Sequence record: LC597490.1
Length of the DNA stretch: 64,000 bases
Strand: one strand, 5' to 3'
The position numbers and the translations under genes are program-made. Below, in pieces: positions 12,959 through 53,798 of this stretch (within the stretch, counting starts at the first letter, position 1; every line of letters starts with the position of its first letter). The notes beneath the pieces are model-generated. The model saw nothing but the letters and a program-made list of their open reading frames with translations, was not told where the DNA came from and searched no databases.

Positions 12959-13810
12959 ATGCGTAAAGTAGTATATGGTTCAACAACAGTAGACATCGAG
13001 GACAACAACTTAACAGTGGAGGACATTCGTGAAGTAATGTCTGAAACATACCCTGAGTTAGCAAATGCAACACACACTGAGCGTGATGGTGTTATTGAGT
13101 TTAAGGTACAGGCGGGCACGAAAGGTGCTCTTCGTGTTGTTAAGTATGGTTCAACTACAATCGACATCGAAGATGATGCGTTAACTGTTAATGATATCCG
13201 TGAAGTTATGTCGGAAACTTACCCTGAATTGGCGAATGCATCTCATACACAAGAGGGTAACGTTATCGAGTTCAAGGTGCAAGCTGGTACAAAAGGAGCG
13301 CTCCGTATTGTAAAATACGGTTCGACTTCTATTGATATCGAGGACGATGCTTTAACAGTCAACGATATCCGTGAGGTAATGTCTGAGACTTACCCAGAGC
13401 TTGCTAACGCTTCTCATACGCAAGAAGGGAACGTTATTGAGTTTAAAGTCCAAGCAGGTACGAAAGGTGCTCTCCGTGTTGTAAAATACGGAAGCACTTC
13501 TATCGACATTGAGGATGATGCATTGACTGTAAATGACATCAGAGAGGTTATGTCAGAAACATATCCTGAGTTAGCAAACGCTTCTCATACTCAGGAAGGA
13601 AATGTCATCGAATTTAAAGTACAAGCTGGTACAAAGGGTGCTTTACGAGTAGTAAAATATGGTTCTACTACAATTGATATCGAAGACGACGCACTAACTG
13701 TTAACGATATTCGTGAAGTAATGTCAGAAACGTATCCAGAACTAGCAAATGCATCTCATACTCAAGAGGGCAATGTGATCGAATTTAAAGTGCAAGCAGG
13801 AACTAAAGGT
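12959..13810 (+). repeat. Five 171 nt coding repeats
   Basis: Units start at 12959, 13130, 13301, 13472, 13643. Confidence 0.95.
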
Positions 13811-13858
13811 GGTCTTGAGTTCTTCAAAGCTATTGCACCAAAATTAAGAAAGAAGTAA
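12959..13858 (+). CDS. Polyubiquitin-like precursor: five tandem Prok_Ub (PRTRC protein C-like) units plus 15 aa tail
   Basis: SD aaagggag, ATG 12959. Each 56 aa unit has YPEL and ends KVQAGTKG, as recalled for PRTRC protein C (YPEI...AVGTKG). Confidence 0.85.
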   Translation: MRKVVYGSTTVDIEDNNLTVEDIREVMSETYPELANATHTERDGVIEFKVQAGTKGALRVVKYGSTTIDIEDDALTVNDIREVMSETYPELANASHTQEGNVIEFKVQAGTKGALRIVKYGSTSIDIEDDALTVNDIREVMSETYPELANASHTQEGNVIEFKVQAGTKGALRVVKYGSTSIDIEDDALTVNDIREVMSETYPELANASHTQEGNVIEFKVQAGTKGALRVVKYGSTTIDIEDDALTVNDIREVMSETYPELANASHTQEGNVIEFKVQAGTKGGLEFFKAIAPKLRKK

Positions 13859-13864
13859 TATGAT

Positions 13865-13898
13865 GGGATGGAGGCCTTGGGCTTTCATCCCTTTTTTT
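13865..13898 (+). terminator. Intrinsic terminator after poly-Ubl gene
   Basis: gggatggaggc-cttgg-gctttcatccc followed by T7. Confidence 0.8.
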
Positions 13899-13935: not shown

Positions 13936-14319
13936 ATGGCTGAAGACAGAAGTATGCAAGAAGTATTAGATGACATCCTTAGTGTTGCAGAAGGTGAAGA
14001 AACTCCAGTACCAGCTGAAGCAGCTATTGAGCAAAATTCATGGGAAAGAGAAGGTTTTGGTGCATTAGAGGCATTTGTTTGTGAGAGATTAGAAGATTTA
14101 CCTCACCAACCGATTCTTAGTGCAGATATCAAAACAAAGGTTAATAGAATCATGTCTGCTGAAAAGGTATCTGATTTAGATGATTTATCGGTGTCTGCAT
14201 TAGAAGCAACTGTTGAGGAAATGAGACGTCCATTAAACGGTCATTTGAATCGTTTGGATGATTTTGCGCCTCGTGTAGCTCGTGCAATGCCAATTGAAAG
14301 AGAAAGTGACTTTATCTAA
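13936..14319 (+). CDS. Acidic hypothetical protein in Ubl cassette
   Basis: SD aaggagg; 127 aa. Confidence 0.7.
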   Translation: MAEDRSMQEVLDDILSVAEGEETPVPAEAAIEQNSWEREGFGALEAFVCERLEDLPHQPILSADIKTKVNRIMSAEKVSDLDDLSVSALEATVEEMRRPLNGHLNRLDDFAPRVARAMPIERESDFI

Positions 14320-15893: not shown

Positions 15894-16619
15894 ATGGCAA
15901 ACCGTCCAGATTCTATTAACATTGAGATTTTACAAGAGGGAGTTACAATCAAGACAACGAAAAATGGTGTAACAACTTTAAAGGAAACAAATCTTGAGCA
16001 GGTTCAACGTCAATTAACAAGCAATGAGCGTATTGAGACGCCGTTGCTTCCAAGTATTTGGGGTGTACAAAAGTTTGTTAAACGTGGTAATAAAGAGTTA
16101 TACGTTATTACGACTCCTCCAGGAATTCGTAAAGTACAGTACACTGGTGATGACCGTGGTGAGTATGAGATTCCTGTACCAGCTGCGATTTGGTTTGTAA
16201 CAGCACAAGAACGTTCTGGTGGCGGACGTCAATTGATTCATACAACAGTTTATGCAATTAAAAATCCTATTTTAACAGGTATTGAACAATTGTATCGTAT
16301 GCCATTTAGTAACTGTGATAACTCGTACATTTGCTGGGGAGATGAGAGTCCACAAATTTCATCACCAAAAAGTGTTCAATCTATCCCAGACCGTTTCTTC
16401 TCTATGCCATTTAACAGTGACTTAGGAAGCAATGCGTATCAACCAATTAAAGAAGTAGTGGATGGAAGAGAAATTAGTCACTTCCGTATCAATCACTTAT
16501 TCCGTTACTTAGATCGTAAATTGAAAGAGGATAAAGATTTCCGTTTCCCGAACAATCATTTAAATAGTTACGAGTCATTTAAGCGTGTACTTGACCACGA
16601 ACTTCGTCGTTTATCTTAA
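15894..16619 (+). CDS. Prokaryotic E2 family D (PRTRC protein B-like)
   Basis: TPPGIRKV..IPVPAAIW..VYAIK..LYRMPFSN...ICWG..RFFSMPFN; candidate catalytic Cys in ICWG. Confidence 0.75.
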   Translation: MANRPDSINIEILQEGVTIKTTKNGVTTLKETNLEQVQRQLTSNERIETPLLPSIWGVQKFVKRGNKELYVITTPPGIRKVQYTGDDRGEYEIPVPAAIWFVTAQERSGGGRQLIHTTVYAIKNPILTGIEQLYRMPFSNCDNSYICWGDESPQISSPKSVQSIPDRFFSMPFNSDLGSNAYQPIKEVVDGREISHFRINHLFRYLDRKLKEDKDFRFPNNHLNSYESFKRVLDHELRRLS

Positions 16620-16678: not shown

Positions 16679-18061
16679 ATGACAAAGGCAGCAGCAAAAG
16701 CAAACGGAATGGCAGCGCTAAGAGCGAAAATGGCAGGACAAACTATGGGATTCCACACTGGTCCTCAAACAGCTGAGGTTTATGCACAAAAACCAACAAA
16801 CATCGTTACAGCAGGTAATGGTGTTTTCCGTGTAATCCAAAAGGATATCGGTGCTTTCATTACGAAACTAGCTGATGGTAAGATTCCAGGTTTACCTGAA
16901 ATGCAAGAAGGAGTGGAATTAGCGATTCCAAAGATTCCTTACAAGTATTGGTTACAAGTATTATCATTCTATAAAGATGTAAATGCAAAAGATGGTACAG
17001 AAGCATCTGTTATCTTCTTCTGGAATACGAATAATGTTCAGATTCCAACTCATTATGACCCAACTCCTGCACAAGCAGCGAAGGGTGAGTTAGGGCCAGA
17101 AGTAAAAGGTTTAACGCAAGATGGTCAATTAATCATTTATTGTCCAGTACAAAAGAACTCTGGTAGTTTATCAGACTTTACGAAAGATTCATTTGTAGAT
17201 TGGTTACGTCTTAATACAGCTCAGTTATTAGAAACACATTCTCATAATACAATGGGTGCGTTCTGGTCAGGAACAGATGACAGCAATGAGAACTATCCAC
17301 AGTTCTACGGTGTTATGGGTAAAGTTTCAAGCCCACAACCTGAGTATCGTTTCCGTTATGCTTTAGGTAAAGAAAAGTTCGATTGTGAGTTATGGGAACT
17401 ATTCGAAAAACCTCAAGTAAAAATGACTGAAACAGTTATTGTTAACATCCCAGGTGTAGGTGAGTACAAAGATGAGCAAGAAGTGAAGAACTTAGACTTC
17501 AATGGTCCATGGCCGATGGTTGAATATCCAGATGATTGGATGGGTCAACATAGTAAGAGTGTATACACACCAACTTACACAACTCCGTACCAACGTAAAA
17601 CATATGGTGCAGCAGGAACTCAAGTTCACGGAGGAGCAGGTGGTGGTAACTTTCCCAGTCTCCACGGTTCAGAAGCCTGGGGAGACGGCTGGGGGGATTC
17701 AGGCTACTGGCCTGGCGTTTCTGGTCAATCTGGCCTTGGCATGGGTGCGGAAGTAATCGAAGGTGACTTCGGATACGGAGAAGGTACCAGGCAAGGGCAA
17801 GAATCGTTCGAAGAATCGTACAAAAAACTCTTACAAGAACCAGTCGCAGGGCAGGGGACGTGGACGTTCGCAAAAGCATGGGAAAAGAAAGTAAGTGAAG
17901 GTCAGCTTGAAACAGATGGAACAACTGTTGATTATGTAATCATGGAACCAACTGAAGCTGAAGAACGTGATGAAATTCATGCATTAATTGGTGAATTAAT
18001 TAACTTTGGTACGTATGCGACCATCGTTGATATTGCAAGAGATGAACACCTCGTAGAGTAG
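16679..18061 (+). CDS. JAB/MPN+ isopeptidase (PRTRC protein A-like) with long low-complexity C-terminal extension
   Basis: GNGVF; EASV (catalytic E); ETHSHNTMGAFWSGTDD (HxH...S..D). Confidence 0.85.
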   Translation: MTKAAAKANGMAALRAKMAGQTMGFHTGPQTAEVYAQKPTNIVTAGNGVFRVIQKDIGAFITKLADGKIPGLPEMQEGVELAIPKIPYKYWLQVLSFYKDVNAKDGTEASVIFFWNTNNVQIPTHYDPTPAQAAKGELGPEVKGLTQDGQLIIYCPVQKNSGSLSDFTKDSFVDWLRLNTAQLLETHSHNTMGAFWSGTDDSNENYPQFYGVMGKVSSPQPEYRFRYALGKEKFDCELWELFEKPQVKMTETVIVNIPGVGEYKDEQEVKNLDFNGPWPMVEYPDDWMGQHSKSVYTPTYTTPYQRKTYGAAGTQVHGGAGGGNFPSLHGSEAWGDGWGDSGYWPGVSGQSGLGMGAEVIEGDFGYGEGTRQGQESFEESYKKLLQEPVAGQGTWTFAKAWEKKVSEGQLETDGTTVDYVIMEPTEAEERDEIHALIGELINFGTYATIVDIARDEHLVE

Positions 18062-18130: not shown

Positions 18131-18988
18131 ATGAAACTTGAAAAAACTTATTCTTTAGATACTATGTACAAAATTGCTAAACACTTTATCGTAATTGGTG
18201 CTGGTGGTAATGGTGGTTACTTTATTCCACAATTAGCTCGTATGGTTTCTGTTCAAAACAAAATTCGTGAAGTACAACGTTTACCGTTACATCGTATTAC
18301 AATCATTGAAGCTGATGGCGTAGAAGCAAAGAACTTAACTCGTCAAAACTTTATCTCATCTGATATTGATAAGAATAAAGGTGAAGTAATGGCAGCTCGT
18401 TATGCTCGTGCATTTGGTCTTGAAATTGGATTAGTAGCTCAGTATCTTGATAGTCCAGATATGTTAGCTAAGATTATGCGTGAAAGCAAATCAAAAGAAA
18501 CACCAGTTATTTGCGGAATGGTAGATAACAATAAAACTCGTAAGTTAATGCATGATGCATTTAAATCATATGATGGTGCATTTTATCTTGATGCAGGTAA
18601 TGAAGAGTTTGCAGGACAATGTGTTCTAGGTTATAACCATCGTAAAGATCGTTTTGTTTTACCAAGAGAAGGTGGAGATTCGATTCAAAGCTTTAGCTTA
18701 CCAAGTGTTTGTGAGATGTTCCCAGAGGTAATGGAAGCGAAAGATAAGTTGCCAACTGAAATGTCTTGTGCGGAACGTTCTGAATCAGCTCCTCAGAATA
18801 TTTATACAAACATGACAGCAGCAAATGAAGCATTAGGATTTATTAATCATTTATTAACTAGTAATGCAACTGGTACAACACCAACTGGATTACGTGTTCA
18901 TGCAACAATCTTTGATTCTCGTACAATGAATAAAACAACTCGTTTTAATCGTACAAGTGAACTTGAAAAATATGCAGCGGGGAAATAA
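18131..18988 (+). CDS. E1/ThiF-family Ubl-activating enzyme (PRTRC ThiF-like)
   Basis: IGAGGNGG, DGVEAKNLTRQNF, NKGEV, MVDNNKTR, YLDAGNEEFAGQ, SCAE (catalytic Cys), QNIYTN. Confidence 0.9.
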   Translation: MKLEKTYSLDTMYKIAKHFIVIGAGGNGGYFIPQLARMVSVQNKIREVQRLPLHRITIIEADGVEAKNLTRQNFISSDIDKNKGEVMAARYARAFGLEIGLVAQYLDSPDMLAKIMRESKSKETPVICGMVDNNKTRKLMHDAFKSYDGAFYLDAGNEEFAGQCVLGYNHRKDRFVLPREGGDSIQSFSLPSVCEMFPEVMEAKDKLPTEMSCAERSESAPQNIYTNMTAANEALGFINHLLTSNATGTTPTGLRVHATIFDSRTMNKTTRFNRTSELEKYAAGK

Positions 18989-19016: not shown

Positions 19017-19490
19017 ATGAATTATACATTCTTCTGGGGTGGTATATTCTCTCAATGGCATAAATCTAAATTTGAAGTTGATGGTATTACATTTAATTGT
19101 GCTGAACAATACATGATGTACCAAAAAGCATTATTATTTGGAGATGAAGAAGTTGCTAAGAAAATATTAACGAAGTCTAATCCAAGAGATCAAAAGGATT
19201 TAGGTAGAAAAGTAAAAGGATTTGTAGAAGAAACCTGGAATAAACATGCGAAAGAAATTGTTTATAAAGGTAACTATGCAAAGTTCACTCAAAATCCTGA
19301 ACTATTAAAAGGATTAAAGGCTACAGGTCAAACATTATTAGTAGAAGCAAGTCCTCATGATGACATCTGGGGTATTGGGTTAGATGAAAAAACAGCTCGT
19401 AAAACACCAGAAAAAGATTGGAAAGGAACAAATTGGTTAGGCGAAGTACTAACTAATTTACGATTTAATTTAATCGAGGAAGGCAAATAG
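19017..19490 (+). CDS. NADAR (YbiA-like) family protein
   Basis: FSQW, AEQYMMYQKA, AKFTQN, LVEASPHDDIWGIG, GTNWLG. Confidence 0.9.
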   Translation: MNYTFFWGGIFSQWHKSKFEVDGITFNCAEQYMMYQKALLFGDEEVAKKILTKSNPRDQKDLGRKVKGFVEETWNKHAKEIVYKGNYAKFTQNPELLKGLKATGQTLLVEASPHDDIWGIGLDEKTARKTPEKDWKGTNWLGEVLTNLRFNLIEEGK

Positions 19491-52392: not shown

Positions 52393-52719
52393 ATGAGTGA
52401 CCAACGTAAAAACAGAAAAGAACTACGCACAGGTTTGTATCAGTTCTTGATGATGATGTATTCATCTTATTTAGAATCACAATCACAAGAAGATGCGAAA
52501 TCATTTGTACAACAGGAATTGCAGCATCAATATCGCTTATTCTTTAGTGAAGACATTGATGATGAAATTCTTTTTCTTTTGCTTGAAGAAAGAATTGCGG
52601 CTTTCAAAGATAAATTGATAGAGGCAAAACAAGCAAAGGAAGGGGATTTAGTCCTTCATTACACAGAACAAATAGAAGATATGAAGAAAGTAATGTCATC
52701 AATTAAAAAGGGGAAATGA
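52393..52719 (+). CDS. Hypothetical protein
   Basis: 108 aa, SD gggag. Confidence 0.65.
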   Translation: MSDQRKNRKELRTGLYQFLMMMYSSYLESQSQEDAKSFVQQELQHQYRLFFSEDIDDEILFLLLEERIAAFKDKLIEAKQAKEGDLVLHYTEQIEDMKKVMSSIKKGK

Positions 52720-53798
52720 GAATGTCAGAATTAGATAAAGCCATGGCAGCCATTAACAAAAAATTAGGTAGAACAGTAGTAACACGTTTAACAGAGGACT
52801 TTGTACCTCATGTGAATGTATTTAATACTGGTTCACTTACACTGGATTTAGCAATAGGTCGTGGAGGATATCCTCGTGGTCGTATTGTTGAAATCTTTGG
52901 TGAAGAGTCATCAGGAAAAACGACTCTTTGTTTATTGGCGATTGCTGAAATGCAAAAGTTAAATGAGGGTGCTTGTGTATTCGTAGATTATGAGCACACA
53001 TTCGACGCTCAATTAGCAGCTGCATATGGTGTTGATGTAGAAAAGTTAATCTATATTGACCCTAAAACAGCAGAAGAAGGTATTGACGTTACTGAAGCGT
53101 TAGTACGTACTGGTGAAGTACGATTAGTTGTTAAGGATAGTGTATCTGCAATGGTACCAGCTAAGATTGCTGACTCATCTATTGAACAGCAAACAATGGG
53201 CTTGCTTGCTAGATTCATGAGTACAGTATGTCAGAAGTTAACTGGCCCAGCTTATGCAAATGATTGTACAATTGTCTTCATCAACCAAGTACGTGAAAAG
53301 ATTGGTGCTTATTCTCCAGTTCCTGGTCAAGCAGCAATCACTACTTCAGGTGGACGAGCATTACCATTCTATTCTACAATTCGTCTTCACATCAAACGTA
53401 AGGACCGTTTAAAAGCTCCAGATGGAACTCCAATTGGTCAAAAGATTCTTGCTCGTGTTATTAAAAATAAGATTGGCGTTCCAAATAAAGAGGCATTATT
53501 TGATTTATATTACAATGTAGGTGTTGATAAGGTAGATGAGATTGCTCAGATTGCAGTCTTAGCTGGTATTATCAAGAAAGGTGGAGCATGGCTTCGCTTT
53601 GAAGAACCAAATGGAGAAGTACGAGTTGTTGGTGATGTTGAATATAAATGGCAAGGGAATGCAAAATACCTTGAGTTCTTACAAAACAATCCAATGTTTG
53701 TAATGGAACTTGAAGATCGTATTCGTGGTCGTGAAGTAGAAGCTCCTGAAGCTCGTATCGAAGAGGGCGAAGGTGCAGTAGACGAAAATGCATATTAA
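52716..53798 (+). CDS. recA: Recombinase A
   Basis: TGSLTLDLAIG.GGYPRGRIVEIFGEESSGKTT, DSVSA, FINQVREKIG, GGRALPFY, KNKI. Confidence 0.95.
   Translation: MRMSELDKAMAAINKKLGRTVVTRLTEDFVPHVNVFNTGSLTLDLAIGRGGYPRGRIVEIFGEESSGKTTLCLLAIAEMQKLNEGACVFVDYEHTFDAQLAAAYGVDVEKLIYIDPKTAEEGIDVTEALVRTGEVRLVVKDSVSAMVPAKIADSSIEQQTMGLLARFMSTVCQKLTGPAYANDCTIVFINQVREKIGAYSPVPGQAAITTSGGRALPFYSTIRLHIKRKDRLKAPDGTPIGQKILARVIKNKIGVPNKEALFDLYYNVGVDKVDEIAQIAVLAGIIKKGGAWLRFEEPNGEVRVVGDVEYKWQGNAKYLEFLQNNPMFVMELEDRIRGREVEAPEARIEEGEGAVDENAY

Follow-up and report, generated by a model that had tools for sequence, protein, structure and literature searches.

How do the repeats of a single gene remain nearly identical in protein when their silent sites have diverged to saturation? 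The question is raised by a ubiquitin-like repeat gene (poly-Ubl) in the DNA analysed here, a stretch of 64,000 nucleotides (the window) that is part of the genome of Bacillus phage vB_BceM_WH1 (WH1; LC597490.1, 229.8 kb), a 12.9-kb stretch of the record being identical to the window. The gene and its parts, with unit coordinates in the register AL...TKG, are:

12959 to 13858, plus strand: poly-Ubl gene gp211, 299 aa, five Ubl units and a cap tail, recognised by Pfam, NCBIfam and the tandem period
12959 to 13126, plus strand: unit 1, 56 aa, starting at the start Met; divergent, 12-13 aa off units 2-5
13127 to 13297, plus strand: unit 2, 57 aa, AL...AGTKG; same protein as unit 5, with 32 codons different
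13298 to 13468, plus strand: unit 3; dS to its orthologue in phage Edson 1.11, above units 1, 2 and 5
13469 to 13639, plus strand: unit 4; over 29 nt (codons 23-29, counted from the Arg after the Ala-Leu linker) its Edson orthologue matches unit 3 fully
13640 to 13810, plus strand: unit 5, closing with the last AGTKG
13811 to 13858, plus strand: cap tail GLEFFKAIAPKLRKK, 15 aa, and stop codon
13865 to 13898, plus strand: terminator-like hairpin of 12 pairs followed by a T run, directly 3' of the poly-Ubl gene

The units follow each other head to tail with no spacer (tandem period 171 nt, 76% matches), and a Shine-Dalgarno-like AAGGGAG lies 8 nt 5' of the ATG. Unit 1 has its orthologue in the first unit of Edson (dS 0.37) and in that of a second relative, P0002 (38% of same-amino-acid codons differ). 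In GenBank gp211 is labelled a virion structural protein; a literature search covering the phage names and PRTRC in phages found no papers and no basis for this label. The cap tail was also considered as a C-terminal tag common to other small proteins of the window, and the pattern matched no other open reading frame.

Contigs from two oligo-dT RNA libraries (tick metagenomes) end at 13892 and 13771, with summed depth dropping about 20-fold and about 6-fold downstream; for the contig ending at 13892, depth past the end is 3, down from 61. As contigs cannot prove transcription, this is at most a hint of a highly expressed transcript that stops at the hairpin.

A reading made earlier from the letters of this DNA (the sequence-only reading) took the silent differences between the units as an argument against an assembly artefact, and this is borne out. 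The GenBank record is identical, Edson has kept the five units, and three isolate genomes as well as independent public runs contain the same five-unit array. In Logan contigs from two independent studies every unit is retained; these contigs depart from the window at 1 to 13 bases, of which 1 and 11 fall within the gene. With an open reading frame and strong family matches in addition, an assembly or annotation artefact has practically no probability left.

Run X3 represents a close strain in which the same silent change occurs in two units each, with columns numbered from the Arg after the Ala-Leu linker: in column 45 of units 1 and 3 (13096/13438) and in column 43 of units 2 and 3 (13261/13432), with a change at 13273 adding to the cluster. 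The changes render units 2 and 3 identical over 17 nt and may be a recent micro-conversion.

The gp211 protein matches Pfam Prok_Ub (PF14454) in five stretches (E 3.4e-27, 94.5 bits, cut-off 25) and the PRTRC_C model TIGR03738 (73.6 bits, cut-off 45.95), both above the curated cut-offs. For unit 2, AlphaFold2 with 36 aligned units as input gave a model of pLDDT 90.2 whose elements run E E H H E E, i.e., beta-beta-alpha-beta-beta, with a loose AGTKG tail. Its top Foldseek matches are nearly all ubiquitin, SUMO and Ubl proteins (TM 0.55-0.66, probability at most 0.95), at E-values that are weak for a 57-residue unit model (0.1-0.6), and searching solved structures with a profile of the aligned units gave chance-level matches only. 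Judged from the model, the unit is a beta-grasp fold. Across the 36 units, from 10 arrays, T55, K56 and G57 never vary, and conservation of A53 and G54 is 90% or more. The C-terminal glycine is conserved and predicted to be available for adenylation.

A word search found 14 further poly-Ubl proteins of 3-6 units each, and DNA was taken for most of them. The contigs of the relatives reach 229 kb and have a common gene order: poly-Ubl, a small protein, a protein of about 500 aa, E2, JAB-like and E1. Every array consists of units of 54-70 aa ending in [AG][TV]KG, followed by a cap 1-21 residues long that is often just one N, E, M or V. As far as can be read from the sequences, head-to-tail units with a conjugatable motif on each and a C-terminal cap are the layout of a polyubiquitin-type precursor. 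A scan of IMG/VR with the poly-Ubl protein gave no confirmed match.

Several of these arrays have features of their own. In P0006, P0007, P0013, P0014 and P0015 a lone extra Asn follows the last TKG; yeast UBI4 carries Asn as its cap residue too. Two phages, here called 8 and 9, have two adjacent poly-Ubl genes of 4+3 units whose cap tails differ (L016:152-1527 and L017:3240-4613), and one or two DUF5065 genes lie between them and the remaining operon. The P0010 array (L012:2475-3203) holds two Ubl types, 2+2; the types are about 41% identical, and each pair is near-identical.

Downstream of the array, the window contains the following genes:

13936 to 14319, plus strand: gp212, small protein with no family match, at the same position in contigs L004-L012, L016 and L017
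14334 to 15863, plus strand: gp213, about 500 aa, with a coiled-coil region; position conserved, no significant family
15894 to 16619, plus strand: gp214, E2-like protein of Prok-E2_D type (BLASTP E 7e-34 to a protein of L006; common ICWG cysteine motif)
16679 to 18061, plus strand: gp215, JAB/JAMM peptidase, candidate processing enzyme (H-x-H-x7-S-x2-D motif in the alignment)
18131 to 18988, plus strand: gp216, ThiF-type E1 adenylyltransferase (PF00899, E 1.5e-11)
52716 to 53798, plus strand: phage RecA homologue (PF00154, E 1.9e-79, 263 bits)

The L006 protein matched by gp214 carries PF14460, Prok-E2_D. For gp215 there is a weak Prok-JAB match (E 0.003) and a PRTRC_A match (3e-8) with 33.3 bits against a cut-off of 101.8, while gp216 matches TIGR03736, PRTRC_ThiF, with E 2e-29 and 102.7 bits, under the curated cut-off of 144.75. 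No ParB-like gene was found among the scanned gp207-gp209 and gp211-gp219, and the WH1 locus does not hold a canonical PRTRC cassette of a ParB-like gene and PRTRC A-F above cut-off. The presence of RecA in this genome, already claimed from the sequence, is confirmed; the PF00154 match at 218557-219354 of the record corresponds to 52728-53525 of the window.

The operon varies between relatives. Beside the E1 gene WH1 has a NADAR-family gene (window 19017-19490), and Edson has an unrelated gene (L002:12051-12482; a forced alignment gives 16% identity). At the position of the JAB-like gene the P0002 phage has homing-endonuclease genes of the HNH and LAGLIDADG types, flanked by ORFs of 193 and 275 aa (L004:10818-13803), which suggests an intron, intein or insertion there.

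The silent differences within the WH1 array had been counted by hand. On recount, units 2 and 5 do encode the same protein with 32 differing codons, although this protein has 57 residues and not 56; units 2 and 3 differ at exactly 34 synonymous and 2 non-synonymous of 57 codons. Long runs of identical nucleotides are indeed absent, the longest in-register run being 11-14 nt among units 2-5 and 17 nt once unit 1 is counted in. Whichever two of units 2-5 are compared, they differ at 32-35 synonymous and 0-2 non-synonymous codons and have 75-79.5% nucleotide identity. For every WH1 paralogous pair the NG86 dS is incomputable, as the synonymous differences are beyond the range of the method, i.e., saturated.

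Could the array still be homogenised as DNA, by unequal crossing-over and long-tract gene conversion acting on whole repeats? Silent sites should then be more alike within genomes than between them, and this is not what is seen: paralogues within an array differ at 0.50-0.64 of the same-amino-acid codons, non-orthologous units from other genomes of the same clade at 0.43-0.73, and fixed synonymous differences between arrays are 0 against 31-51 polymorphic ones. Nor is any array much more alike silently than expected, as the same-amino-acid codons differ within arrays by a mean of 0.44-0.63 (16 arrays) with a lowest pairwise fraction of 0.29-0.58. Positional orthology between phages, described below, is also kept. 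Short conversion patches do exist, and in the arrays KLEB27-3 (KLEB), P0011 and P0007 the units differ slightly less than expected at random; all the same, ordinary concerted evolution at the DNA level is a very improbable account of these genes.

The opposite possibility is that the silent sites are more different than drift would make them. Two nulls were used (1000 synonymous shuffles), one based on the codon usage of the phage genome and the other on permutation of the array's own codons within the same amino acid. With only about 50 comparable codons per pair in a single array, units 2-5 of WH1 differ at 199 of 326 codon pairs, against 171 +/- 11 under genome usage (P=0.007) and 183 +/- 7 under own-codon permutation (P=0.006). 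Their longest identical run is 14 nt where 21-23 are expected (P 0.017-0.034), and for all five units the excess is weaker (z=+1.7, P=0.04). These values hint that the WH1 array is slightly more scrambled than chance. Its codon evenness is about 1 sd above other genes, with 6 of 40 genes equal or higher, and is thus no outlier.

In units 2-5 (window 13133-13816), 12 of the 22 two-fold columns are split 2:2. Six of these 12 columns pair unit 2 with unit 5 and unit 3 with unit 4, as does a Thr/Ser site at codon 9; the pairing is absent from the overall distances between WH1 units.

The sequence-only reading had offered selection for recoding as an explanation. In a fuller form, variants that break up identical runs would be favoured after every duplication or homogenisation, as they lower RecA- or annealing-mediated deletion, and silent sites would be pushed apart faster and further than by drift. 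The WH1 excess, its short longest run and the 2:2 columns agree with this, as do the permutation z values of P0005 and P0012 (+1.8 and +1.9), the longest runs of 15-16 nt in phages 8 and 9, where 22 are expected (P=0.013 each), and the presence of a phage RecA. A strain-level comparison counts 11 silent changes within the gene's 900 nt and 7 within 1100 nt of flank, and the internal WH1/P0002 orthologues have diverged beyond the flanking genes.

As a general rule, however, recoding is not supported, also by the sequence part of the test that the sequence-only reading itself had proposed: the family as a whole matches neutral saturation. Over 12 independent arrays the permutation z ranges from -2.4 to +1.9 with a mean of -0.41 (Stouffer -1.41), and three arrays are clearly under-dispersed; same-amino-acid codons differ on average by 0.545 within these 12 arrays and by 0.61 between unrelated ones. 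The P values of the longest identical runs look uniform overall, and the 12 arrays combined show no significant shortage of long runs (Fisher's combined P about 0.24, worked by hand). Further, the dS of the WH1-Edson array equals that of its flanks, and the codon evenness of WH1 is ordinary. The hints are limited to WH1, P0005 and P0012 (synonymous excess) and to phages 8 and 9 (short longest runs), and we regard active selection for recoding as unlikely.

The spread of z among arrays does exceed a single null (sum of z squared 27.6, 12 df, P=0.006). There may be residual conversion in KLEB, P0011 and P0007, and extra dispersion in WH1, P0005 and P0012. Metagenome assemblies are biased against DNA-identical units, so that the lack of young, identical units is weak evidence.

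At the protein level, the comparison of phages gives a different picture. Between WH1 and Edson the gene has an omega of 0.045, the strongest purifying selection in its neighbourhood, with an array dS of 0.57 where the flanking genes have 0.25-0.72 and a median near 0.58. WH1 and P0002 are 72% identical in the poly-Ubl protein (dN 0.174, compared with 0.174 for E1 and 0.237 for E2), and the other arrays are 32-54% identical to the WH1 protein. The protein has thus diverged by 28-65% between phages, yet internal units within each array are 96-100% alike. In a tree of units, these group by array (21 label changes versus 51.9 with shuffled labels); eight arrays form single clades, six of them strongly supported.

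A McDonald-Kreitman-style comparison of internal units expresses the same in numbers. Between WH1 and P0002, 10 non-synonymous differences are fixed and 7 polymorphic, against 0 and 39 synonymous ones (P=5.5e-7); for KLEB and P0012 the counts are 22 and 3 against 0 and 31 (P=1e-12).

The arrays are nevertheless not young. WH1, Edson and P0002 all have five units and an orthologous, distinctive first unit. Positional orthologues of WH1 and Edson have a dS of 0.37-1.1 where paralogues are saturated, and in phages 8 and 9 they differ at 0.17-0.43 of codons compared with 0.46-0.69 for paralogues. As positional orthologues are still recognisable, the arrays must be older than these two splits. Re-amplification after the split of WH1 and P0002 was considered and rejected: paralogues differ at 61% of same-amino-acid codons, unit-1 orthologues at 38% and flanks at 24-46% (P=0.007 and 2e-12). 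Since the paralogues are silently more diverged than both orthologues and flanks, the internal units of WH1 predate that split. Internal positional orthologues of WH1 and P0002 show a silent difference of 0.51-0.60, above the flanking genes, and this could reflect a faster silent turnover inside the array.

With these dates, the sequence-only account of old repeats under strong purifying selection without homogenisation can be taken apart. Old age is upheld by the positional orthology and strong purifying selection by the omega of 0.045, while the absence of homogenisation holds at large scale only, as short patches exist. As a full account it falls short, because the units are uniform within a phage despite the 28-65% divergence between phages. 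Purifying selection alone cannot, on these comparisons, explain the pattern, and amino-acid replacements have spread across units, in part by way of short conversion patches.

A related proposal is birth-and-death only, i.e., each lineage amplified one unit independently and long ago, and the silent sites then drifted under purifying selection with nothing synchronising the units. It would account for unit numbers from 3 to 7 among relatives, for units clustering by array and for silent sites saturated everywhere. It does not sit well with the five units and orthologous first unit common to WH1, Edson and P0002, nor with internal units that predate the WH1/P0002 split (61% versus 24-46%) and yet share 10 lineage-specific fixed amino-acid differences. 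Parallel changes, seen directly in two close phage pairs, speak against it as well. We consider it improbable, and for the WH1 clade it is already contradicted.

The spread of REPLACEMENTS is directly visible in these two pairs, WH1/Edson (13 amino-acid differences) and phages 8/9 (L016/L017). Codon numbers here start at the Arg after the Ala-Leu linker (unit 2 from 13133), the AL...TKG register being +2, and the direction of parallel changes is polarised by distant outgroups only. At codon 27, all four internal units of WH1 have Ser and all four of Edson have Ala; in units 2 and 3 the unit-specific third base was kept during the change from Ser to Ala (TCG/GCG and TCT/GCT). In the linker, Leu became Val in three Edson units with three different codons, GTT, GTA and GTC.

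Other changes came as patches. In unit 4 of Edson, a 29-nt stretch that includes the Ala codon (codons 23-29) became identical to unit 3 via 7 base changes, and codons 2-4 of Edson unit 3 are identical to unit 2. Accordingly, the orthologous WH1-Edson dS is raised in units 3 and 4 (1.1 versus 0.4).

In the other pair, one column has Glu in 7 of 7 units of phage 8 and Ser in 6 of 7 units of phage 9, spelled TCT four times, TCA once and AGC once. Four of the six Ser units (A u3 and B u1-u3) retain their unit-specific spelling in both neighbouring codons. The codon before the Ser went from AAT to AAC in A u1 and A u4, and A u4 also has a change in the codon after it; all five TCN units are preceded by AAC and the two other units by AAT. 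This pattern fits patches a few bases long, and the AGC codon, from its spelling, cannot be a copy of TCT. For single-base changes, micro-conversion and independent mutation look alike. As each parallel event was fixed separately, selection on the protein must drive the spread.

We suggest that the gene is an old polyubiquitin-style precursor in which silent saturation arose by drift, while purifying selection together with the spread of single codons or short patches keeps the copies alike; this we hold to be the probable explanation. Translation would yield one chain with the 57-residue beta-grasp tag in five copies. This chain is predicted to be cleaved behind every AGTKG by the JAMM peptidase encoded nearby, and the released monomers would be activated by the phage E1 and passed to E2.

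The silent sites would have drifted to full saturation because the units have long been un-homogenised over long DNA tracts. Two forces would then keep the proteins alike. The first is strong purifying selection, with omega at about 0.05. The second would be selection that brings each accepted replacement into all units, one codon or patch of at most 30 nt at a time, through micro-conversion between units and in some cases through independent mutation. A plausible reason for uniformity is that all monomers mix in a common pool, where each has to work with the same E1, E2 and peptidase.

The minimal homology for recombination in E. coli is roughly 20-30 bp. No two units share more than 17 identical bases, and the array should therefore be a poor substrate for RecA-type deletion. 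Such protection would be a by-product of saturation and not a demonstrably selected trait.

A variant of this explanation has selection act on each unit separately to keep the copies identical. Here the proteins would evolve in concert without homogenisation of the DNA, since a replacement that improves the monomer would be favoured anew in each unit, via codon-sized templated patches or fresh mutation, even across the serine codon families, and the DNA would stay recombinationally inert. In some of the phages (WH1, P0005, 8 and 9) a second, weaker selection would also shorten long stretches of identity. We regard this variant as possible, if on balance doubtful.

Among known systems, eukaryotic polyubiquitin (UBI4, UBB and UBC type) is similar in its spacerless head-to-tail Ubl units, in a conjugatable C-terminal glycine at each junction and in a short cap, often of one residue. 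It also shares identical proteins despite many synonymous differences, and a first repeat that is less uniform. The phage unit differs in its 57 aa, its Prok_Ub family, the single G after TK and the phage host. Ubiquitin is nearly invariant across eukaryotes, while the phage protein diverges by 28-65% and is still uniform within an array. Because of this near-invariance, purifying selection alone can explain the uniformity of ubiquitin. As a passage of PMC10457151 recounts, concerted evolution (Sharp and Li 1987) has been set against purifying selection with birth-and-death (Nei et al. 2000, PMC27115) in the dispute over polyubiquitin.

PRTRC protein C, of the Prok_Ub family, is similar through the family match above cut-offs and the nearby ThiF-type E1, E2-like and JAB-like genes. 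It is a single domain, whereas the phage gene is repeated 3-7 times and lies in a jumbo phage operon. The locus also differs from the PRTRC system in that no ParB-like gene is present among the scanned neighbours and the E1 and PRTRC_A matches are under the NCBIfam cut-offs.

Ubl domains of the Bil/Bub type differ among themselves and work together as one multidomain Ubl, which has only one conjugatable end, while the phage units are near-identical, each with its own AGTKG end. Bacterial polyUbl proteins (operon class 6e) have been described as reminiscent of poly-ubiquitin (Iyer et al. 2006, PMC1779556), and Ubl2 and Ubl3 proteins are found in Bil and Bub operons (bioRxiv 10.1101/2024.11.21.623966). 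Both resemble the phage gene in having two to three beta-grasp domains per chain beside E1, E2 and JAB genes; they are non-phage proteins of few domains, and not arrays of near-identical, putatively cleavable units. Finally, it is engineering practice to scramble the codons of synthetic repeat genes for DNA stability and assembly. These have identical protein repeats in different codons as well; the phage arrays look like drift to saturation and not like a design with over-dispersion.

No description of phage poly-Ubl arrays was found in the literature searched. A polyubiquitin-style precursor, together with the phages' own E1, E2 and JAMM, is present in at least a dozen lineages of large Bacillus-type phages. 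The argument about what keeps such repeats uniform has been running since 1987, and in eukaryotes, where ubiquitin barely changes, it is difficult to resolve for that reason. The phage arrays provide the missing contrast, a polyubiquitin-like gene whose protein changes between lineages, and they indicate that copy uniformity can be maintained at single-codon resolution without homogenisation of the DNA. They also offer a natural case of a repeat gene with diversified codons that is stable in a RecA-encoding genome.
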